DNA of 63,803 nucleotides, counting the filler, from Dicyema japonicum (taxonomy: Eukaryota > Animalia > Dicyemida), in assembly GCA_011109175.1 (NCBI GenBank). It is 6 parts of 6 records of this genome, joined end to end, with 100 filler letters (N's around TTAATTAATTAA, not from the genome) between each part and the next. Parts side by side here need not be neighbours in the genome. Positions count along the whole stretch, not along the records: positions 41,554 to 55,077 come from RDEW01000021.1; 5 more parts are not named here. The stretch is one strand, 5' to 3'. Positions 41,454-55,077 of this stretch are shown here, in pieces. The position numbers and the translations under genes are program-made. Position 1 is the stretch's first letter; each line of letters opens with the position of its first letter. The notes under the pieces were generated by a model. The model ran no database searches. It saw nothing but the letters and a program-made list of their open reading frames with translations, and was not told where the DNA came from.

Positions 41454-41554
41454 NNNNNNNNNNNNNNNNNNNNNNNNNNNNNNNNNNNNNNNNNNNNTTA
41501 ATTAATTAANNNNNNNNNNNNNNNNNNNNNNNNNNNNNNNNNNNNNNNNNNNNT

Positions 41555-43990
41555 TTTTTTCCAGATCCCTGAGAAATTGAAAAAGCATATGTTCGCTCTT
41601 ATGGGTTATAGGAACCAATCCTCTTCCTAGTCTGTTCCTTGGCATATAATAATAAAGCCTTTTCACGAGAGCCATAGTATTTATAGCTCCGCATAGGCAG
41701 GACACACACTTTATTTAAGTAAAGAACAGTTAATTTTAACTAATCGTAGAACCAAGGAATGATCTTTACTTCTTTTTTTTCTTTTTCTTGTGTGAGTGTC
41801 CTTTCTAGACAATCCAGTACCGCAGTGAGTATCCACTGATAACGGCGTCACTCGTCAAACCCTTTCTGCATCGTAGATGCGTGGAACCTTCCACCAGGTG
41901 AACAGCAGCGAGATTCGAACCTGTAACCTAAGTCACTTAAGCCCGACACCTAACCACTATACCACCCAGCCTGTTCCTTGGCATATAAAGTCTTTATTGA
42001 AGGTTTCAGATGAATTCGATGACTTGTAAGTATCCCGCGTATTTTTATTAATATTCTCGAATTCGTTTGGATCGATATCGACAAGTCCGATGTAGTAATT
42101 ATATAGTGACAGTGCATGTTCGTTGATGGCCTTGAACATGTTAGCAGAGTTAAGTTTCGTATCTGCTAAATTATTTATTCTCTTGTTCATCGTATCAAAA
42201 ATTGCCTTCAATACATCATTCTTCAAAACACTGCTTGACTTATCTTCAAGCACTCCCAGATAGCGGTAGCCATCAAGTAACCTTGCCTCCTCAAATAAGC
42301 TTCGTACATTTGTTGCTGACTTATCAAAATTCTTTTCAAGTCCAGCAGCTTCAAAGAAAGCATTGACTTGATTCATCATTCTTACCAATGTATCCTCTTT
42401 ATGGAAAAATAGTTTTAAATCATCCATAGACAATGGATGATTTGTTGCGTATGAGAGTGACATCCGATATGGGTTGTTAATTATCACTCTCGGAAATTTT
42501 TAACTTAATGATTGCTTAACACATCCATCACAAGGACAAAGATTTGAGGAAACAGTGAATCGCCCTGTAGGATCCCCCTTTTCAGTTCACTACTCCAATC
42601 ATTTTCTGACTAAATGTCAATTTAATCTTCCATTTAGTTACCAAGTTTTTAATAAAATTAACGATCCAAACAGGCAATCCAGATGTCTCAAGTACTTTAT
42701 TCAGGAAATCATGATCCACGGAATCAAAAGCCTTTTTAACGTCTATCCAGGCAGTAACCAAATTATTCCCGTTCTCCTGATTGATACACTGATTTATTAG
42801 TGTTTTCTCTTTGGCCCCTTAATAGAATTGGTTGTTACTAATCAGTCTATATGCTTCAATGTAGTCTGATAGTTTCCTATTCACACATTTCGTTGTCAAC
42901 TCGTACATATTTGGAATACAGGTAATAGGTCTCAAGTCTTTTGGAGACTCACAATTAACTTTTTTCGGGATCAAATATATTATTCCCATGTAAAACCACT
43001 CTTGAGGTGAGTATTCACCATGGATTATCCTGACGATTTCTTCACAAAGTGAGTCATGTATTGATGTAAATTTCTTAATAAAGAAATTGTACACTCCATC
43101 GCATCCAGCTGCCCTCCAGATTGGAGAAATTTTGATCATATCGAGGACGAATTCTTTAATGAAATTAGCATGCATTTCATCAAAGCATGTAGAGTTCTTA
43201 TTTAATTAAAAGACTTTTTCCTCATTGTCTTGTATATTCCAGATGTTCTCCCAGAATGCGAGGCACTCATTTTCATTAAAGCCAAACTTGGCTTTTTCAT
43301 GTTCTCCATTTAGATTCCTGTAAAAGTATCTCCTATTAAGTTCAAAGCACCAGTTCTGTCTTTTAAATTCGTTTCTTGACTGATGAATTTTTAGTTTCTT
43401 TTCTAAGAATTTGATTGCATCTTAGAAACAAAATGAAATTCTTCCAATTTCTCCCTTCTTTGATTTTCAAAATCCACATCCACACAGCATTTCTTCGTCA
43501 TAACTTTGGTTTGATTTCTGATTTGTACCATTCTCTTCTTCAATTCAATCAGTTTCAACTAAATATGGTGACTCCAATTATTCTTTTTTCTTGTAGATGT
43601 TGAGAGAGTTTCATAAGAACATTGTCCAGCATAAACGATATCAGTTATATCGTTTAAATTTACAGGAGGATTAGATTTCATATATTCATAGATCGCTGAA
43701 TTAATTCCTCCTAAAAGATCCTTTTTAATGAGCTGGTGAGTGATTATCTTGGTTTCCGTAAATCACGAGGAATCAATTTGATTTTCCCAATTTGTAGAGA
43801 AAATTCGCTATAGCATCTTGTAAAGTTGGAAATTTCGGTTGAAGGGTTCTGGGAAATTTTATACGATAAAATATCTGCTTTTCTTTCTTTAAGTTTCAAT
43901 AGCATTTGTAAATTTGAAACTGATTTATTGCATGAAAATTTATTATTAAAGGCCTTGATTATAATTTGCCATCCACCACGGGGAATTCTA
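41555..43990 (-). mobile_element. Second RLE-type (R4/Dong-like) retrotransposon, degenerate, interrupted by a SINE
   Basis: WRAAGCDG, LRPITCIPNMYEL, WIDVKKAFDSVDH, MDDLKLF, YRYLGVLE, LYMPRNRLGRGL. Confidence 0.85.
41650..41970 (-). mobile_element. Full-length tRNA-derived SINE with 18-bp TSD
   Basis: A box GGTATAGTGG, B box GGTTCGAATC; TSD CTGTTCCTTGGCATATAA at 41632-41649 and 41971-41988; TTA-type tail. Confidence 0.9.
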
Positions 43991-44436
43991 TCAAACCTTC
44001 TATGAGCAGCTTGTTAATCCACTCAACTTTATCAACCTGCTTTACTTGGTCAATTGCTAGTAGTTTTGAAAAAAAGATCAGGTTGTGCATCCGAAGGAGA
44101 TTCATTAATAATTTCCTGGGTTTCATACATCCCGAGGACCACTTTCTCTACGTTCTTATTGGATTTTCCATCATTAATTTTCGTAAATAGGTCCTTGGAA
44201 CTTGCTTCACAAACATTTGCTGAAATAAACATGCACAACACCACAAGAAAAGTTAATATAAACCTGTCATTAATATTAATTTATATTAAATTTATAAAAA
44301 ATTAAATATATTTTCAAATGCTTTTCCAATGTGTGCTTCTGAAACAAACATGCTCTACACCACAAGAAAAGTTAATATAAACCTGTCATTAATATTAATT
44401 TATATTAAATTTATAAAAAATTAAATATATTTTCAA

Positions 44437-45769
44437 ATGCTTTTCCAATGTGTGCTTCGGTCCATTAAATTTCAGCGACTTCTCATCCAAAATTGGAATA
44501 GAATTGCAGCCAAAAAGTCAGCGGAGAAAAAGAAAGCTCATAGCGCCCTTATTTCATTGGATGTGCTCAATGGTAGAGCATTCGGGGAACTTTGGCCTGG
44601 AATTCGATTAGCCCTGGCCTCTCCTCATAAGTTGGCTCTCCTCACAGAGCGTGGCCGTCACTCCCATCCCCTCATACAAAACCACATTCAAAATGGATGC
44701 TATGATATAATTTCCTTCTGCTTTACTGGTAGTGATGTTGTCGAATCCAACACTGTTGAACTTAAGCACGTGGATTTCAATGTCAAGAATAACGAACCAG
44801 AGCTCCCTGTTAATCATTTTGATAACGATCTATTCCGCTTTGTCCCTGCGGATGATTATCAGACAAATTACGGGACCTTGGAGGGTTCTGTTAACCGAAA
44901 AGACTTTTCCAAACCAGAAATTGTCAAATCCACCATATCCAAGGTAAATCTCCACCGATTGTCTGCCTTTGCATACGAGAGAGGATCTTCCCGGAATCCT
45001 GAGCCCTACCATGACGGTCTGTCTTTTAATTACTTCTCAGATTCCATCGCCCGTTTGATTGATCCTTCTTTCCTTCTCCCTGTTTATGCCTCCGAGGTAT
45101 CATCTGATCCTGTTCTCTTTATTGGCTATGGAGACTCCGATCTGCTGACCATCCTTCGAAGGATTATGTCTCCGAGTTAGTTATTCTTCAGCTATTTAGG
45201 TAATCTCGTCCACCAGTCTTTCACAACGACTTCGTCCTCATCGATTCAGATTTTCTCGGAATGCCAGAACATTAGTGATCAGCTCCTCTCCAACAAAAGT
45301 CCCTACATGAACGTTTCAGCATCTATTTAGTATTAGGTCTTTGTGGACTCCCTGGAATTTAATGACCGATTGATTCTTCCATCGCACGTGCAGATACTTC
45401 ACCCAAAACGCAGCATTGAGAGGGTTCGGCAGATTGAACGGCAGATAAATCTTTTGATGTAAATTGTCTTTAGTAGGCAGATATGGTCTCACTAATGTGG
45501 CCGTCGGGGGATGCTTGATTTACTGTGTGAGGAGTCTCGTAAGAGTTTACACAGATGCTATGATTGACAACCTGTTTTGTTTCCTGTCGATGAATGGAAT
45601 GGGAGATCGTTTTGATTTTGTTGTGGAAGATGTGGATGTTCTCCAACCGACTTTTCAGCAGGTCTTCAGAATTGCTACTTCTCACGGAGGACTGGGTCAG
45701 TTTGTCATTCCATTTCTTCTTGAGAACTACGGACCTCTGTATTTTTGCAAAATTGTGCGTGTGAAATAA
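44437..45769 (+). CDS. NSUN4: NSUN4-like mitochondrial rRNA m5C methyltransferase homolog with degenerate active site (420 aa)
   Basis: Exons 44437-45175, 45200-45312, 45337-45458, 45481-45769 join to 421 codons with no internal stop. FGELWPGIRLAL, LIDPSFLLPV and GQFVIPFLLENYGPLYFCKI match NSUN4. Confidence 0.85.
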
Positions 45770-46148
45770 TCATCTTTTTATACTTATAAATTGACTATCT
45801 TCAATAGTTTGGGTTTATTAAGGGGGAGGTTGCCTTGTCGACCCTGAAATTTTATATGCCCAAGGACCAATTACCTGAGAGGTCGGAAGGTTGAAGTGGT
45901 AGCGTACCTTTATTGCATGAAATATTTTCTTAGCTACATGATAGATGGAAGTACTTGAGTTACCCCCCTTGATACACCACCGAGCACGATTCAGTGGCTT
46001 AGTCTGCTGGAACTGCATATTCAATTTTCATGATGCGACTAAAAGCAGCACTGTCCTCATACCGATCGCGTTGGTTAACCTCAAAAAGCAAGTAACGCAT
46101 ATATAAAGCCCACGTGTAACAAAATACAAAAATTATTAAAAGTTAAAG

Positions 46149-46602
46149 TCATAATCGTTTGGGGGTGTGGAGATTGAACTTCTGTTTGACCCTATTGAGT
46201 TCCTCCCGTCGTTTATCACTATCAACGTCTTTCAGAACCTAAAAATAGCTAAGAGGGACCAGCCTTGTTTGTTTGGTAGTAAAGGACCACCAAGTATCTG
46301 TTGCACACGTTGAACCCTTGAAGGTGGTCACATGCGTTCTTGGCGTCAAAAATATCCTCGTATATGACAAAAGCAGACCCACGTGTTTCATTTGTGCTCC
46401 CACTAAGAGTTAGGAAGCGATGCTTACACTCGAATTTGACGAATCGCCCCATATTTACCAAATATGTCGTATATCTCCTCTGAAGTGCACTTGTAGGGAA
46501 GGTTCCTCACATATAGAATCCTATTTACTTCTGGTGGTAGTCTTACCTTAAAACAATAAGTTTATTAAAATTTACATTCTTTCCTTGAAATTTATTGACC
46601 AT
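46149..46602 (-). CDS. SF3B6: Splicing factor 3B subunit 6 (p14)
   Basis: [19 protein letters not shown]...[11 protein letters not shown]|[42 protein letters not shown]; introns of 29, 25 and 25 nt, the last GC-AG (46239-46263). Confidence 0.95.
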
Positions 46603-46704
46603 GACAGACAACAGCAAATATATTTTCAAGAATTTATTATTATTATTTAAATTTATTTAATTAATAATTAATATATTTAAATTTTAATCATTCATATTGT
46701 AGCA

Positions 46705-46784
46705 GCTTTTGGCTTTTTTGCTGAACGTTAACGTCTGATGACATCGGATCTGTAGGTCGTGGGTTCAAATCCGAAAAATGGAGC
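46705..46784 (+). pseudogene. tRNA-like pseudogene (Arg-like), duplicated at ~46845-46925
   Basis: B box GGTTCAAATCC after AGGTCGTG; disrupted anticodon arm TCTGA..CGGATC; poor acceptor and T stems. Confidence 0.35.
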
Positions 46785-47406
46785 TTTTAGAGAAAATCAA
46801 TTCTCGTCCCACAGAATTTAAATTTTAATCATTCATATTGTAGCAGCTTTTGGCTTTTTTGCTGAACGTTAACGTCTGATGACATCGGATCTGTAGGTCG
46901 TGGGTTCAAATCCGAAAAATGGAGCTTTTAGAGAAAATCAATTCTCGTCCCACAGATACCACCCGTGAGGCGACGAGTCCTTCTGGCACGGCACAGTTGT
47001 TAAAAGAGATCTTCCTACCTTTCTTCCTGACCAAATTCTCTGATGAAGATGCATTATGAATAGTATTCCGCTAAAGAATAAAGTGATGTCCGCGACGGTA
47101 CGAAAAAGGCGGACTTACTTCCCCACCTCTCTTCGGAAGCCTGTAATGAAGTATTGGAAGATGGATTTGGTCGTCACAAGCGGATGTTCTCCTTTTGGTT
47201 CCTTTCTTGGATTAGTTAGTTATGACTGTTTGTGCTGGGCGTACAATGGTAAGCCTGGGGTTAATAGTAATAATGTTAAAGTAACAGTTAAATAACAGTC
47301 CAACATAGTCCTTTAAGGGTGGCATAGTGGTTAGGTGTCGGGCTAAAGTGACAATAGTAATAATGTTAAAGTAACAGTTAAATAACAGTCCAACATATTC
47401 CCTTAA

Positions 47407-47720
47407 GGGTGGCATAGTGGTTAGGTGTCGGGCTAAAGTGACTTAGGTTACGGGTTTGATTCGCTGCTGTTCACCTGGTGGAAGGTTCCACACATCTACG
47501 ATGCCAAAAGGGTTTGACGAGTGACGCCGTCATCAGTGGATACTCACTGCGGAACTGGATTGTCTAGAAAGGACCCACACACAAGAAAAAAGAAAAAAAG
47601 AAGTGAAGATCATTCCTTGGTTCTACGATTAGTTAAAATTAACTGTTCTTTACTTAAATAAAGTGTGTGTCCTGCCTATGCGGAGCTATAAATATTATGG
47701 CTCTCGTGAAAAAGCTGTTA
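47407..47720 (+). mobile_element. Full-length tRNA-derived SINE
   Basis: High identity to 41650-41970; A box TGGCATAGTGG; imperfect TSD ATATTCCC(T/A)TAA on both sides. Confidence 0.9.
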
Positions 47721-47749
47721 AAAAAATATTCCCATAAACTGGCCTACTT

Positions 47750-48530
47750 TTTATGGTTAAAACTTCACATGTTTTTGCTTCATTAAATGTATTTATTATT
47801 GGTCGCATCGTGGATCGGATCACTCTGCGTTTCTTGAAGAAAATCAGTTTCTCACATAAGAAGAGTACACTTTTTTGGAGTCGAACAAACTCTACCCTTG
47901 TCACTGTCTGAGTCGTCGATACGAAGGAATGATCTCGGATTTTTTAAGTCCTGTCAAAAGCCAGAAAATCTGTATGTCCGTATTAAGTTCTGAAAATGAC
48001 TATAATATTCTGTACTGAAAACTGTATAATCACACGTTAAATGTGACAAAATTAATTTATGCAAGTCTTTTCTATTCCCCAAAAAACGATAGCCTTCGTC
48101 CGTAAGAGTTATATGACTACCGATTATTCTCGCACTACTCTTGCGTTGGGAACCGCTGGTATAAACGAAGATCAATTTAGAGTCCCATGCAGGTCATAGA
48201 AAGGATCTTTTACTCTNCACACGTTAAATGTGACAAAATTAATTTATGCAAGTCTTTTCTATTCCCCAAAAAAACGACAGCCTTCGTCCGTAAGAGTTAT
48301 ATGACTACCGATTATTCTCGCACTACTCTTGCGTTGGGAACCGCTGGTATAAACGAAGATCAATTTAGAGTCCCATGCAGGTCATAGAAAGGATCTTTTA
48401 CTTTACCCTATACTATTAGATAATTTCTCGAAATTCCCACAACTGTGGTTGAGGAAGTAGAAGACTATCAGGGTAACACCAGGGTAAACACCAAAAAGAA
48501 TATTTACCAACCAAAAAAGAAAACAAACTA
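47750..48530 (-). CDS. Possible unidentified small gene downstream of the protease
   Basis: Open segments with a hydrophobic stretch (GVYPGVTLIVFYFL) and GT..AG spacers; confounded by a duplication. Confidence 0.2.
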
Positions 48531-48536
48531 GACCAA

Positions 48537-50276
48537 TTAACTAAATATTGGGAACGTAGCAAAGTCCGTCACCCCACAGTAACCATTGAGGACTTTGATG
48601 TATCCATGGGAACCCCAATAGTTCCCCCACGAGTTTTTCAAAATCCAATATATCTCACCGTCTTTAGTGGTCCCATACCCAACCAGCAGCATTGCATGCT
48701 TATTATCATATTTTTCTGAAATGACCCCAAAGAATACTGCATTCGTCGCTGTCGTAGATCCCCGAGTGGTATAAACTGAAAGAAATGGGTCCAGAGTTAA
48801 ATCGAACAGTTAGAGGACCTTCATAGTACAAAGCCGCCATTATGGACTCCACATCTGATTCGACCACTTTATATCCCTTAATTTTGATTAAATTCGTTAT
48901 ATTTTTCTTACACTCCATATCCTTGAATATTATACATATTAAACATTCCCCATGTAGGGTCCGTAAGCTCTTTCTGTCGCAAGTCCATATAAGTGCATAA
49001 ATTTATAGGAGTGAAGCTCATTTCCACCAAAGCATCCTCTGTTTCTTTCTCCCCAAGAGCAGTCAAGTAGCTGCTGTACTGAAAATGACTCTGATTTGTG
49101 ATTTTTAATGAAGTAATGAGACTCGACAATCCCCGTGGATAGAATAGCCCAACAGGATCCACAGATTGCCTGATCCTTTACAGAGGAAACGGCACCTATC
49201 AAATCACTATGAGAATCACCATATGCCCGCCAATCCCAATTACTAGGAAGTTCTGAAGTCCCCTTTGGGGGTTTATAAAATCCTAGGAAAAGGGGGTTAT
49301 TATCCAATATGTGAATTTTGTTATTTATTAAGCACCTAATACGAGAATCTGTTGAATCGATGGCTTTTGGATTGAGGGACAGTTTATATGAGGATTTCTT
49401 CAGGTTATGAGCAGTTGCATAACTCAAATAAGAGAAAAGAGTACCGTACTAAGTTCAAGTGGTTGATTTCTCTTTCGTCGTTTTTATCAACTCCATATTT
49501 CCTGACGGATGCATGAAACTGATCTTTGTGGACTTTTTTTGACCAATCGTTTCCCATATAATCAGAAACTGGGTCGATATGACCTTCTGACTCATCCGTG
49601 ATGTCACAGTGATCTAAAATTCCGAGACTCTGATACAATTGACCAGCTTATTAGCCTGTGATTGCAAGAGGCCGTGTCCATAGGGTTTAGTGTTATAATA
49701 TTCAATTATATATTCGTCATAGAATGACCCGAATAGCTTTTCAATCCCGAAGGTGATGTACCTTAGGGGAACTCCAGTCGTATCTGTGAAGAAGTAGTAG
49801 ATATTAATCAGCCCTAAAGCTGTGAAACGACTTGTCCAGACGAGACACCTTCTATGGCCTATTAAACGACCACGATATGACCAGCAGGGATTCAAGCCTT
49901 CAATTCTCTGCATAATCCTAAGTCAAATTAGAAACCTCAAAGTCGGACAAATCAGGAAATATCGAGGTGAAATGACCACTGATAATGCACGTGGTACGTT
50001 CTTCTCCGTCAAACGAGGAAGGTACAATATTAATACTTCCTGTTAAATCAGATGACACAAAAAATGAGCTGTCTGAGCTATTACTATGATACTACCATTA
50101 TAGTATGAAATTATTGATGATTCTGCATTCCCGTCGTATTTCATTTTAAAAGGAATCCTTATCCCACTGTCCGGTTTTACGATCTCCCCTTCGACTTGGT
50201 ATAAATTCAGAATGAGAGGTTTTACGTCTTCCACATGCCAACATTTCAAGCACAACCATAATAAAATGAAAATCAT
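48537..50276 (-). CDS. Papain-family (C1A) cysteine protease with long N-terminal extension (26/29-kDa proteinase / cathepsin L-like)
   Basis: Signal peptide MIFILLWLCLKC; prodomain; mature domain LPSNWDWR, VKDQAICGSCWA, FSVQQLLDCS, GCFGG, KHAMLLVGYG, YWILKNSWG; catalytic C/H/N all present. Confidence 0.9.
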
Positions 50277-50399
50277 CAAAATTAGGTTAATTTATAATTT
50301 ATTATATTTTAGGTTATCCAAGCATATTTACAGCAATGGTCATAGATTCAAATCCTCCTCAACTAATTGGTCCAGGAATCTCTTCATAAGCCCTCTTTT

Positions 50400-51800
50400 T
50401 TCTTTTTTTAATTAACGTCGTGCCATGCGATCCATTTGACTCAGAAGGTGTCCAATCAATCAAAAGGATCATTTGCTCTCCATTAGATCATTTCTTCGAG
50501 GGTTCCTCACAACTGTGGTTTAGCGCTTGGAAGTAGTTGTCTTTTGATTACTTTGATGGTGGGAACTGGATGCTGTTAATTATCACCAACGCAGACGTGC
50601 AGACTATCACAATAATTTCAACTAAAATTCGAGCGAAAGGAACATTACTCTAACAACTGGATATTCTTTATTTCGAAACCATTTTATTTTGATGGAGATC
50701 AAATGATCCCTTTTAAACCATCCTGACACGTGATGTTACCTGAGACAGGAAAATAATANTTTGCTCTCCATTAGATCATTTCTTCGAGGGTTCCTCACAA
50801 CTGTGGTTTAGCGCTTGGAAGTAGTTGTCTTTTGATTACTTTGATGGTGGGAACTGGATGCGCTTAATTATCATCAACGCAGAAGAAACAGACTATCACA
50901 ATCATTTCAACTAAAATTCGAGCAAAAGGAACATTACTCTAACAACTGGATATTCTTTATCTCGAAACCATTTTATTTTGATGGAGATCAAATGATCCCT
51001 TTTAAACTATCCTGACACGTGATGTTACCTGAGACAAGAAAATAATATGACCATTTGTAGAATCATAGTAATAAGCACCTTCAGTGAACCATAGCCCACA
51101 TTCGCAACACAAGAGACAATGCCAGTTTTTTTTAAGCTTCTCTTGTTAGTGATCCCATAGAGTCTAGGTCGTACACTCCCTTGTGTCAGATCAAAGGTCA
51201 GTACCACCAAAATGTATGATGTCAACTAATATTTTTGTTTAGTTTCATGGTGGGTAATAGCCCATGTTATTTGAAATATGGAAGGTGGCAGACTCAAAAA
51301 CGGAACTATTGGCTACAAATCTATATTAAAATCTCGTCCGACCAAAGATTAAAAAACTCGGGGGATCATCAGTCAGGACTGCACGTATGGATGATACGGG
51401 ATTAAAGAATTGAAAGGAAAGAAAGAGTCAACTAAGTGATCGTAGACCAACAAGGTGGAGGACGAGACCGACGTTGACTGGCATTCTGTATTACCCTTTT
51501 TATTGGATTACCCTTTTCATCAAATACCATTTCGCATTTGAGAAGAATTTGTCTAAGGGACTGCCTTGTATGGTGGTTACTTTCAATGAGTTCCGTTGTC
51601 TTTCAACAAAAAACTCGAAACTTGCTCTAACAAATTTGTTAGCAGTTTCTTTAACTATCCACTTTCCACTATCACAGAAACAGAGTCCTTCAACGTCACA
51701 CAAGTTCATCCAGAACCAGCATAAAAGGTAGACGTCCATTCCTTGCAGTTGTGAGAATTTCTCAAGTGGAATGGGGGAGCAAATGGTAATGTCACAACCT
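50400..51800 (-). CDS. Possible unidentified Cys-containing secreted or membrane protein gene
   Basis: Open, Cys-rich segments (CDQPPSGCDITIC; LCDVEGLCFCDSG) separated by short spacers; exon structure unresolved. Confidence 0.25.
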
Positions 51801-53420
51801 GATGGAGGTTGATCACATACGACACTTTATTGGATAAAGGAAGAAGAGCAACAGAAGAAACAAATAGAAATATTAAATCAATTAGTCACATGGCACCGCA
51901 CTAATGTTGAAACCACGTGCCTTTATCCTTTACTAATAATGTTGGAAATAATACTAACAAAAAGTATAAGTTTCAGAATTTCCAATTTTTTTAATTTTAT
52001 CAGTTCATGACATATGTGAATCGATCGATAAAGAGGTTTATCTTTGTAGTGGGAAAAATGTACGGTTTTTTGGATTAGGAAGAATAGGGAGAGAATTAAT
52101 ATTGTTAATATGGGTCAAATCAAAATCCTGGGTTGTCTGAAGAGGTGGAAACTTTTTAAAACCTAAAAATATAGTGAAGGAAAGAACAGCCAATTTGGGA
52201 TCCCAATTGTCATAAAACATCATTTAATCACGTGTTCTTAGCACTCCCACCAGTTTTTAAAGTTAGTTAGTTAAATTCCCCTGTATCTGAGCGGCTAACG
52301 GCTAAAAAATAAGTGGTAGTGAATGCTAGTAGCTCACATAGATCGATCACTTTCGGCTTCTGGACATTTGAAAAAGTGATTTGCTGTTGAGTCAGAAAGA
52401 TTGCGAACAAGAGAGGACACTTTTCGTATCACTTACTGTATATCCGTATATTAATGGAGAGGAATAGTGTACACAAGGTAGAGGAGCAAGATTTCCTAGA
52501 CTTCCTTCGAAAGAAAATTCTATTAGATCAGGGGTCAACGTAGTATTCTGTTATAATCGAGTATTGGACGACCAATGTGGAAGAAAAATCCAATTTCTGT
52601 TTCAAANCCAGATTTCCTAGACCTCCTTCGAAAGAAAATTCTATTAGATCAGGGGTCAACGTAGTATTCTGTTATAATCGAGTATTGGACGACCAATGTG
52701 GAAGAAAAATCCAATATCTGTTTCAAACAACCTCGATCTTAAGACATGAAGGATGACGTTCGAGACAGGTCATTAATCCAAGACCACTATTAAAAACCAA
52801 GAACTAAATAATCTCAGCATACTCTAATAGTGGACTCAGCATGACACGGTGATCTTCTCTTGTATTAGTCACTCCAGAGTTGTCAGCATTGGACCATACT
52901 CACCTGGAAATCCACTGTTCCGTTAATTTGTCTGATCTTTCTGCCGCTGGAATTTTATTGGAATTGGTCCAAGAGATAAATGGGCCCCAGGAAGTACATG
53001 TATAGGAGATGCATGTCTCGATGTACTGTTTGTATAAACAATTCAAAACTGGATAGTTTCTTAAGGTTTTTCGAAGGTTGGAAACTGTTGATTTTTAAAA
53101 AGTTAATAAATTAATGTAAAATATTAAAGTAATAATTTAAATTTAAATCCNTTCTCACCTGGACATCCACTGTTCCGTTAATTTGTCTGATCTTTCTGCC
53201 GCTGGAATTTTATTGGAATTGGTCCAAGAAATAAATGGGCCCCAGGAAGTACATGTATAGGAGATCATGTCTCGATGTACTGTTTGTATAAACAATTCAA
53301 AACTGGATAGTTTCTTAAAGTTTTTCGAAGATTTGAAACTGTTGATTTTTAAAAAGTTAATAAATTAATGTAAAATATTAAAGTAATAATTTAAATTTAA
53401 ATCCACTCGTTTGTTGCCTT

Positions 53421-54051
53421 ATGGGATCTACTTTGTCATCTCGTCTAAGTGAGCCAGAAATTGAAGATTTAAGCACCGAAACTGGCTGTATTTTTAAATG
53501 TAAATTTGACAGTCAGTAAAAAACAAATACTAAGGCTTTACAACAGGTTTATTATACTGGATAAGTCCGGTCACGGTTTCCTAAGGTAAACATGTGTCTC
53601 AGAAATCCAGCCCAGAGGACTTCCACAAAATTCCAGAATTGGAGATAAATCCCATTCGGGACAGAATAATCAACCTCTTTTTCAAAGAGAACGACAAATT
53701 CATAAACTTCAGACAATTCCTTCGAACACTTTCCGTGTTCAGACCAGTCAACGGGCACGAGGGCTGCGATCGGGTGGCAAAACTGAAATGTATCTATTTT
53801 TCGCAATTCCAGTTGCTTACTCAATCTACGACATCGAGGAGAATGGAGTGATAACGATGAACGACATCCTCCAAGTTCTGCGAATGATGGTGGGACAGAA
53901 TATGTCTGAGGAACAACTGATGAGTATTGCCACGAGGACCACCATGGAGTCCGACTATGACAAGGATGGAGTCATCACTTTTGAGGAGTTCACTAATGCT
54001 ATGGCTAATTTGGATGTGGAGAAGAAAATGAGTGTTCGTTTTGTCGATTGA
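53421..54051 (+). CDS. CHP1: Calcineurin B homologous protein 1
   Basis: MGSTLSS (myristoylation-type start), PELEINPIRDRII, QVLRMMVGQNMSEEQL, DVEKKMSVRF; introns 53488-53512 (25 nt), 53586-53610 (25 nt), 53790-53812 (23 nt). Confidence 0.95.
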
Positions 54052-54500
54052 TTTGCTTTAATATTTAAATTATACCTTTTCCTAAAGCTATAGACAAATG
54101 TCTCCCTACAAGTTTCAATTTTAGGGTAAACTGGATTCAAACTGGTCGTCCGACTCACTTCAAATTTTGGTTTCATATGTTTTTGCAGGGCGTTATTTCT
54201 GGGATTTACCGGTTAAGGAGTGCTTTCGTCAGTTAAGAATCGATATTCAGGGGACAGAGGTCACAGCCTTAACAGATTGGGTAATACATGGACGGTGAAC
54301 TATAGAAAGATCATATAAGTTTTATAATTGTCATTATTAAGTAAAGATTTGGATAATAAGTGTCAATTTTGATGTCTCTGGTAGAGTTATGCTAAGATAT
54401 CCTTTCATATTCGTTATCCTATAGCGACTAGGAATTACTTAGGAACTTTCACGTGAACAATTTTCTCATCGAACCGGATAGTTGAGTAGAGAAGCTTATT

Positions 54501-54650
54501 AACAGCATTTTTACGCAAAGCCATATTAGTTATAGCTTCTCCCAGGCAGGACGCACGCTTTATTTAATAAAGAGCAGTTATCATAACTAATCGGTGGAGG
54601 GAACCAAGGAATGCTCTTCACTTCTTTTTTTATTTTTGTTGGGTGTGAGT
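54501..54650 (-). mobile_element. 3' half of the tRNA-derived SINE, abutting a hAT end
   Basis: Matches the SINE tail (AAGAAGTGAAGAGCATTCCTTGGTTC...AAATAAAGCGTGCGTCCTGCCTG). Confidence 0.7.
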
Positions 54651-55077
54651 CAGGGTTGATAGATTTAAATTATTTGATTTTAATCAAAAAATCATTTAAA
54701 TTTTTTTAATGTCTGAAAGAAAGCGTGATGCCCTCTGGTTTCACTTCGATGAACGCATTATTTCTGGAAAGACCGGGAGTCGAGCCAGATGCCGTAATTG
54801 AGGAAGGAGGTACAATGTCTCGGATGAGGCAGCATCATTTGCTATGTTGAAATAATATTGATATCCCTGAAAATTCGTAGAATCCTGAAAGTGATTTGAT
54901 CAGCGAATTTTTCCCAAGGATGAGAGACCAGTCTTTAATCAATTTCGTTACAACGACGACGTCATCGAAGAAAAATTTGATTGATGCGCAACTCGCTAAA
55001 TACATATATTCCAGTAATACTCCTTTTGCTGCCGTCGGCACATTATCTCAACCTTATCTCAAAAGATGTCGAAGTAG
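54651..55077 (+). mobile_element. hAT element left end with BED-finger remnant
   Basis: Terminus CAGGGTTG; KRDALWFHF...GKTGSRARC; IDAQLAKYIYSSNTPF. Confidence 0.65.

Follow-up and report, generated by a model that had tools for sequence, protein, structure and literature searches.

The window analysed here is a stretch of 63,803 nucleotides (nt) from the Dicyema japonicum assembly GCA_011109175.1, in which six parts of six records are joined end to end with 100 filler letters between each part and the next. Its 13.5-kb part from RDEW01000021.1 (positions 41,554 to 55,077) carries on the plus strand a gene of four exons that we identify as an orthologue of NSUN4, very divergent yet colinear. 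In mammals this protein has two separable jobs, the formation of one 5-methylcytosine (m5C) in the small subunit of the mitochondrial ribosome and, together with MTERF4, the maturation of the large subunit, and point mutants made in the laboratory suggest that the chemistry can be dispensed with. The gene described here is plausibly a natural NSUN4 variant, a ribosomal RNA (rRNA) methyltransferase whose assembly role outlives catalysis, a view which the evidence set out below supports in part.

Structure and identity of the gene

The coding sequence is spread over exons of 739, 113, 122 and 289 nt, which together give 1263 nt, or 420 codons and a TAA, and are entered in phases 0, 1, 0 and 2 (junctions rebuilt by hand and checked by script; Table 1). 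The split codons read AGT (Ser) and ATA (Ile). For intron 3 the frame is kept only with the AG at 45479-45480, as the AGs at 45472-45473 and 45475-45476 break it. Exon 1 encodes an N-terminal tail rich in Lys and Arg, the N-terminal segment specific to NSUN4, the beginning of the Rossmann fold and a degenerate motif I. A tandem duplication of 119 nt overlaps the 5' end of the gene and has left an upstream copy of the ATG at 44318, which begins an open reading frame (ORF) of 20 codons. An alternative gene model that runs through the off-frame stretch 45217-45274 (IFHNDF..., compare motif II LxCND) requires two introns, of 41 and 25 nt, and a micro-exon of 13 nt, cuts the spacer between motifs I and IV to about 35 residues and gives zero match to the NSUN4 hidden Markov model (HMM); we judged it a chance resemblance.

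The three introns are extremely short. Myxobolid myxozoans and Dicyema japonicum are the only animals with reported median intron lengths of 22-27 nt (PMC13644364). Six introns of 22-29 nt were seen in the NSUN4 gene and a neighbouring SF3B6-like gene, and four of the six have a T-rich 3' end. Those of the SF3B6-like gene measure 29, 25 and 22 nt and lie between strongly conserved exons, indicating that micro-introns are normal in this genome. Taken alone, the sequence evidence would make a myxobolid myxozoan the probable source and a dicyemid the less likely one.

Table 1. Positions of the NSUN4 gene, its retained and degenerate elements, and further features. Entries prefixed L001 or L002 refer to related sequences described in the last section; all others are positions in the window.
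Feature	Position	Strand	Remarks
NSUN4 exon 1	44437..45175	+	residues 1-246 and first base of codon 247; open stretch, profile match
NSUN4 intron 1	45176..45199	+	24 nt, GT..AG, phase 1
NSUN4 exon 2	45200..45312	+	38 codons counting the split codon (37 residues); Ser/Thr-rich
NSUN4 intron 2	45313..45336	+	24 nt, GT..AG, phase 0
NSUN4 exon 3	45337..45458	+	motif IV/V region; zero Cys
NSUN4 intron 3	45459..45480	+	22 nt, GT..AG, phase 2
NSUN4 exon 4	45481..45769	+	residues 325-420 and TAA; motif VI region, NSUN4-specific C-terminal domain
Trp20, N-terminal tail	44494..44496	+	aligned by MAFFT with the conserved KKKW Trp (human Trp31)
Motif I remnant VLFIGYGDSD (for VLDLCAAPGGK)	45112..45141	+	column-by-column profile alignment
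Motif IV remnant VDSLE (for VDVPC)	45343..45357	+	profile alignment
Motif VI remnant YCVRS (for YSTCS)	45521..45535	+	ungapped alignments
C-terminal tail GQFVIPFLLENYGPLYFCKIVRVK	45695..45766	+	8/9 conserved columns retained
Tandem duplication at NSUN4 5' end	44220..44458		119 nt, 2.0 copies, 97% identity
SF3B6 (SF3b 14-kDa, RRM) gene	about 46160-46600	-	RRM match
Tandem duplications	44220-44458, 46675-46956, 47263-47442, 48030-48402, 50471-51048, 52489-52728, 52899-53404		2.0 copies each
Neighbour genes	48706-49427; 53594-54051; 41957-43175	-; +; -	protease by PF00112, others by eye
NSUN4-like stretches	L001:61-258, L001:845-1111; L002:278-562		nucleophile Cys replaced

Homology searches were run exon by exon, each exon serving separately as the query. 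A HMMER scan of exon 4 against 1.84 billion representative proteins gave 25 matches at E<=1e-3, of which 22 align over exon 4 and are NSUN4-like, the other three being long multi-stretch matches. All ten full-length NSUN4 library matches that were scanned carry PF01189, and the matches annotated by name as NSUN4 come from Priapulus, Argonauta, Halyomorpha, Tachypleus, Centruroides, Littorina, Liolophura and Trichinella. A reference alignment of 13 animal NSUN4 proteins (A1) was chosen from the exon 4 library matches. Compared with A1 by hhalign, exon 1 aligned at profile positions 24-242 (E 4e-10, probability 96.7%; hmmsearch 8e-10), exon 3 at positions 319-359 (E 9e-4; hmmsearch 0.011 among 46 pieces and 0.19 among 824 pieces) and exon 4 at positions 362-451 (E 1.5e-19; hmmsearch 1e-22). 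Conversely, a search with the A1 HMM over the six-frame, stop-to-stop pieces of the 13.5-kb part finds only exons 1, 3 and 4, in colinear order. In PDB, exon 4 matched the C-terminus of human NSUN4 (E 2e-5) with other NSUN family members unmatched, and exon 1 gave weak, position-consistent matches to NSUN4 residues 42-77, its sole consistent match. A word-based homologue search with exon 1 yielded 719 candidates and zero at E<=0.01, so that the N-terminal half is recognisable only by profile, and Pfam and NCBIfam scans of each exon returned zero methyltransferase families.

The features expected of NSUN4 are thus found together: the profile match of exon 1 includes the NSUN4-specific segment that precedes the methyltransferase core (AL..FD..Y....WPSIR..LL), that of exon 4 includes the NSUN4-specific C-terminal domain ending GQLVxPxLxxNFGPMYFCKxxR, and the segments are colinear in one gene of NSUN4 length (420 residues). 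The junction coordinates, phases and single terminal TAA bear out the clean four-exon, 420-residue ORF of the original prediction, and the PDB matches combined with the colinear profile alignments of exons 1, 3 and 4 uphold its assignment to NSUN4.

Catalytic motifs

NSUN enzymes use the motif VI Cys that follows Thr as nucleophile and the motif IV Cys beside Pro for product release; the base is brought into position by motif IV, through its Asp and the backbone of its Pro (PMC6409601). In motif VI, GGCLIYCVRSL stands opposite GGsvVYSTCSL without a gap, replacing Thr-Cys by Val-Arg, and the Q-N that follows has become Y-T. In motif IV, VFVDSLEFNDR stands opposite VLVDVPCTTDR, replacing Pro-Cys by Leu-Glu; the conserved columns retained in exon 3 are D467, D473, R474, R493, Q500 and L504. 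All seven conserved columns of motif I (D-x-C-A-A-P-G-G-K) are altered or missing, with C, A, P, G, G and K all replaced. In active NSUN enzymes, acidic residues of motifs II and III hold the ribose and adenine of SAM (S-adenosylmethionine); here the conserved columns N410, D411, R416, R419 and Y427 have zero assignable counterparts, exon 2 being unalignable.

The profile alignments agree with the motif replacements that had been claimed for motif I, motif IV (VDVPC to VDSLE) and motif VI (YSTCS to YCVRS). Whether a better alignment could return Cys to the catalytic positions was a question raised with the original prediction, and the answer came out in its favour: the dipeptides TC and PC are absent from every exon translation, exon 3 is devoid of Cys and the codons at the junctions encode Ser and Ile, so that realignment cannot restore the catalytic cysteines. 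The broader claim that every catalytic motif is erased holds for both cysteines and for the NSUN loop that binds S-adenosylmethionine (SAM), but not for the motif IV Asp, the D-R pair downstream of it and the G-x-G of motif I, all of which survive. From the translated sequence, we conclude that the predicted protein is no longer able to make m5C by the NSUN mechanism.

Two off-frame look-alikes of the missing motifs were rejected as noise. One, VLGLCGLPG (45330-45356), resembles motif I (E 9 among 46 pieces) and the other, MLDLLCEESRKSL (about 45511-45549), resembles motif IV (E 2.7 among 46 pieces); both are out of order and overlap an in-frame exon.

Retention outside the active site and the proposed role of the protein

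To describe how divergence is distributed along the protein, we considered the alignable columns whose conservation among the 13 NSUN4 proteins reaches 90% or more, leaving out the start Met (n=53). Overall, 28 of the 53 are retained, and the loss is concentrated in the active site, with 0/13 retained in motif I, motif IV (PC), motif VI (STC) and the Q-N columns as against 28/40 elsewhere (Fisher p 6e-6). Retention is pronounced in the C-terminal tail (Table 1). The first 34 residues include nine Lys/Arg and one acidic residue, and Trp20 within this tail aligns with human Trp31, which stacks on A2817 of the P loop in assembly intermediates of the large subunit; deletion of human residues 26-36 leads to fewer mature mitoribosomes (bioRxiv 10.1101/2021.03.29.437532).

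The composition of the locus is that of a coding sequence. The exons have a GC content of 43-45%, that of the introns being 31% and that of the 5' flank 29%, and GC at their codon positions follows the order GC1>GC3>GC2; in myxozoans, coding regions reportedly have a higher GC content than non-coding DNA (PMC11905887). For random sequence with the base composition of these exons, the probability that 420 codons stay open is about 3e-10. In a tree of the C-terminal domain, the branch leading to the present gene is about 2.5 substitutions per site long. An open frame, coding-type composition and accurate in-phase micro-introns despite this divergence argue against neutral decay. Constraint thus appears to act on non-catalytic surfaces and to be absent from the catalytic residues, a conclusion that is partly supported, selection being indicated indirectly. 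The claim that selection preserves a scaffold role therefore stands in part: the intact frame, the composition, the uneven retention, the Trp of the N-terminal tail, the C-terminal tail and the dead NSUN4 fragments of other organisms (last section) speak for it, but their link to selection is indirect.

We regard a pseudoenzyme retained for assembly of the large mitoribosomal subunit as the best reading of these data, and a reasonably probable one. The predicted protein would be imported into mitochondria and would help there, without catalysis, to assemble the large subunit, presumably binding an MTERF4-type partner as in mammals; expression and mitochondrial location are likewise presumed. 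Methylation of small-subunit rRNA would have been abandoned, and constraint would lie outside the chemistry, on the basic N-terminal tail and its Trp, the ALxxxD...WPxIRLAL segment, residues of the fold and the GQxVIPxLxxNYGPLYFCK tail.

The assembly role of NSUN4 with MTERF4 that the original prediction invoked, independent of methylation, is well documented (PMC3916286, PMC8209036, bioRxiv 10.1101/2021.03.29.437532). Mouse NSUN4 methylates 12S rRNA without MTERF4, and maturation of the large subunit depends on the NSUN4-MTERF4 complex but not on methylation (PMC3916286); PMC8209036 likewise describes an assembly role independent of methylation. MTERF4 binds near the N-terminus of NSUN4, and NSUN4's N-terminal tail helps to shape the peptidyl transferase region (PMC8209036, bioRxiv 10.1101/2021.03.29.437532). 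In mammalian assembly intermediates the active site of NSUN4 holds SAM and no RNA, while the N-terminal tail grips the P loop. Caenorhabditis elegans in which the TC-Cys of nsun-4 is changed to Ala is viable (PMC7957426).

Among known systems, human and mouse NSUN4 (PDB 4FP9, 4FZV, 7O9K and related), mitochondrial 12S rRNA m5C methyltransferases and MTERF4-bound assembly factors of the large subunit, are the closest. The present protein shares with them, in colinear order, a basic N-terminal tail with Trp, the WPxIRxxL segment and the GQLVxPxLxxNFGPMYFCK tail, as well as a Rossmann-type core without an added RNA-recognition domain (420 residues compared with 384). It differs from them in the replacement of TC by VR, PC by LE, CAAPGGK by GYGDSD and Q-N by Y-T, and in its unrecognisable motif II/III. 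A further parallel is offered by engineered dead rRNA methyltransferases that support ribosome biogenesis, namely C. elegans nsun-4 Cys->Ala (PMC7957426), METTL15 (PMC11197891) and MRM2, in which methyl transfer is likewise lost, the protein is retained and the assembly or chaperone role matters. In those cases one residue was changed in the laboratory and the enzyme is otherwise intact, whereas the loss described here is natural, affects several motifs at once and is accompanied by heavy divergence of the whole protein. Our literature search found zero papers linking NSUN4 with 'pseudoenzyme', or with Myxozoa, Dicyema, Kudoa or Trichuris. If the assembly reading is true, a natural NSUN4 without the cysteines or the cofactor loop, but with its N-terminal tail and C-terminal domain, would indicate from evolution that assembly by itself can maintain the gene, and the retained surfaces would show which ones that role needs.

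Several observations weigh against a retained assembly factor. The gene has no close orthologue in the library, the best match of exon 4 scoring 46 bits, and identity reaches 38% at most even in this best-conserved part. The RsmB/F methyltransferase domain PF01189 is unmatched by every exon even at E 10, and exon 2 gave zero alignment to the motif II/III region of A1 with hhalign and likewise none with hmmsearch. Copy 2 of the 119-nt duplication holds the 5' flank and the first 22 coding bases of the gene, including the ATG. The degenerate motifs also leave a small opening for residual SAM binding or activity, namely through the G-x-G of motif I, the surviving Asp of motif IV and the Cys of the motif VI remnant, two residues upstream of the lost nucleophile. 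Lastly, if the host were without mitochondrial DNA, as is Henneguya salminicola, in which the mitochondrial genome is absent (PMC13644364), there would be zero mitoribosome to assemble.

On another view the gene is a disappearing relic, no longer needed because, for example, mitochondrial translation has been or is being lost, with a stop or frameshift yet to come. Every catalytic motif is gone, exon 2 is unalignable and of low complexity, the branch is very long, the 119-nt tandem duplication disturbs the 5' end and the myxobolids include H. salminicola, all of which would suit a relic. We nevertheless consider it unlikely, since divergence is far from uniform (p 6e-6) and since after about 2.5 substitutions per site neutral sequence would be expected to lose both 420 open codons (about 3e-10) and in-phase GT..AG micro-introns. 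Neither the excess of 13 points in GC of exons over introns nor the order GC1>GC3>GC2 is expected of neutral sequence. Furthermore, the GC content of the 13.5-kb piece (37.5%) equals that of Thelohanellus kitauei in total (37.5%, PMC4986447), compared with 29.1% in H. salminicola; Myxobolus and Thelohanellus retain the mitochondrial rns and rnl genes (PMC11034133). A catalytic NSUN4 copy elsewhere in the genome, which would make the present locus a diverged duplicate with another role or none, appears quite unlikely. Our view is confined to 13.5 kb of the genome and the long branch would suit a duplicate freed from constraint, but nothing else NSUN4-like occurs in the six frames of this piece and the retained NSUN4-specific N- and C-terminal features are those expected of a working orthologue. 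A weaker argument in the same direction is that the dead forms found elsewhere are the only NSUN4-like matches of their lineage in 1.8 billion proteins.

It is highly unlikely, in our judgement, that the protein is still an enzyme, either because the upstream Cys took over or because SAM is used for another reaction that relies on the motif IV Asp and the surviving G-x-G loop. In the motif I remnant, IGYGD is similar to the generic class I G-x-G loop, the motif IV Asp and D-R pair are in place, and a Cys at the normally invariant Ser is common to YCVRS and to the motif VI of three further sequences described below (YCVQT, FCSRT and FCART). Set against this are the loss of the motif IV Pro and release Cys, the change of Q-N to Y-T, an unrecognisable motif II/III region and a Gly loop that lacks both its Pro-Gly-Gly-Lys and the acidic residue in front of it. 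Moreover, the four sequences of the x-Cys-x-x-x type are ungrouped in the tree, though a single clade is not rejected (AU p 0.16, see below), and no NSUN enzyme is known to use a Cys at that upstream position.

Related sequences and genomic neighbourhood

NSUN4-like sequences that have an NSUN4 C-terminal domain but lack the nucleophile Cys were also found elsewhere, three of them (P0004, P0009 and P0006) among the short matches of the exon 4 library scan. Motif VI reads YCVQT in P0004 (ENA ERZ26222911), FCSRT in P0009, also L001 (Logan ERR14173670), YTTST in P0006, also L002 (Logan SRR13325281), and FCART in P0035 (ENA ERZ27279563), the last recovered by a profile search built on exon 4, P0004 and P0009. 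With VLVDVPTSEER (DVPT) in its motif IV exon, L001 has lost the release Cys as well, and in P0006 the Q-N-D is retained. A 289-residue ORF upstream of P0035 has zero Pfam match on record, which hints that the core is degenerate in this lineage as well. The present gene resembles P0004, L001 and P0035 in that a Cys stands in place of the upstream Ser and the nucleophile has given way to Arg or Gln; unlike its micro-introns, the L001 intron at the matching position is about 590 nt long.

P0006 is sister to a normal Trichinella NSUN4 (support 100/98), and its Cys loss is thus independent. In the C-terminal domain tree, a single clade of the present gene, P0004, L001 and P0035 is neither supported nor rejected by the approximately unbiased (AU) test (p 0.16), and the same test with P0006 added gives p 0.06. 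The Cys-for-Ser and Arg/Gln-for-Cys replacements shared by the four sequences could thus reflect common descent or convergence. Taken together, these sequences, one of them from a probable relative of Trichinella, suggest that NSUN4 catalysis may have been lost more than once among fast-evolving, probably parasitic animals. That the motif VI change, x-Cys-x-(Arg/Gln)-(Ser/Thr), which puts a long polar side chain at the site of the nucleophile, represents a shared and conserved remodelling rather than plain decay seems quite improbable; were it true, an old NSUN4 lineage may bind instead of methylate a flipped-out base or rRNA segment, or may use a relocated nucleophile. Were the host without mitochondrial translation, the function of the protein would lie outside the mitoribosome.

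In the neighbouring SF3B6 gene, the conserved C-terminus is recovered only in a frame in which the 22-nt intron is spliced as GG..AG or, with a one-base slide, as GT..GG, unless there is a one-base sequence error. The other neighbours comprise a papain-family cysteine protease of at least two exons (PF00112), for which a word-based search with an exon of this cathepsin-type protease gave zero matches, an EF-hand protein similar, as judged by eye, to calcineurin B homologous protein, and fragments of a reverse transcriptase of a retrotransposon without long terminal repeats, likewise recognised by eye and with zero Pfam match.

Zero transfer RNAs (tRNAs) or Rfam families were called in the 13.5-kb piece. 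The 141-nt unit duplicated at 46675-46956 has a tRNA-like 3' half, GGTTCAAATCC, that resembles a T-arm; ARAGORN and Rfam call nothing there, and the unit may be a tRNA-derived short interspersed nuclear element or a fragment of one. It is one of seven tandem duplications within 13.5 kb, each of exactly 2.0 copies, with periods of 90-289 nt and identities of 95-100%. This density is unusual; it could be genuine or could have arisen as an artefact when long reads were assembled.

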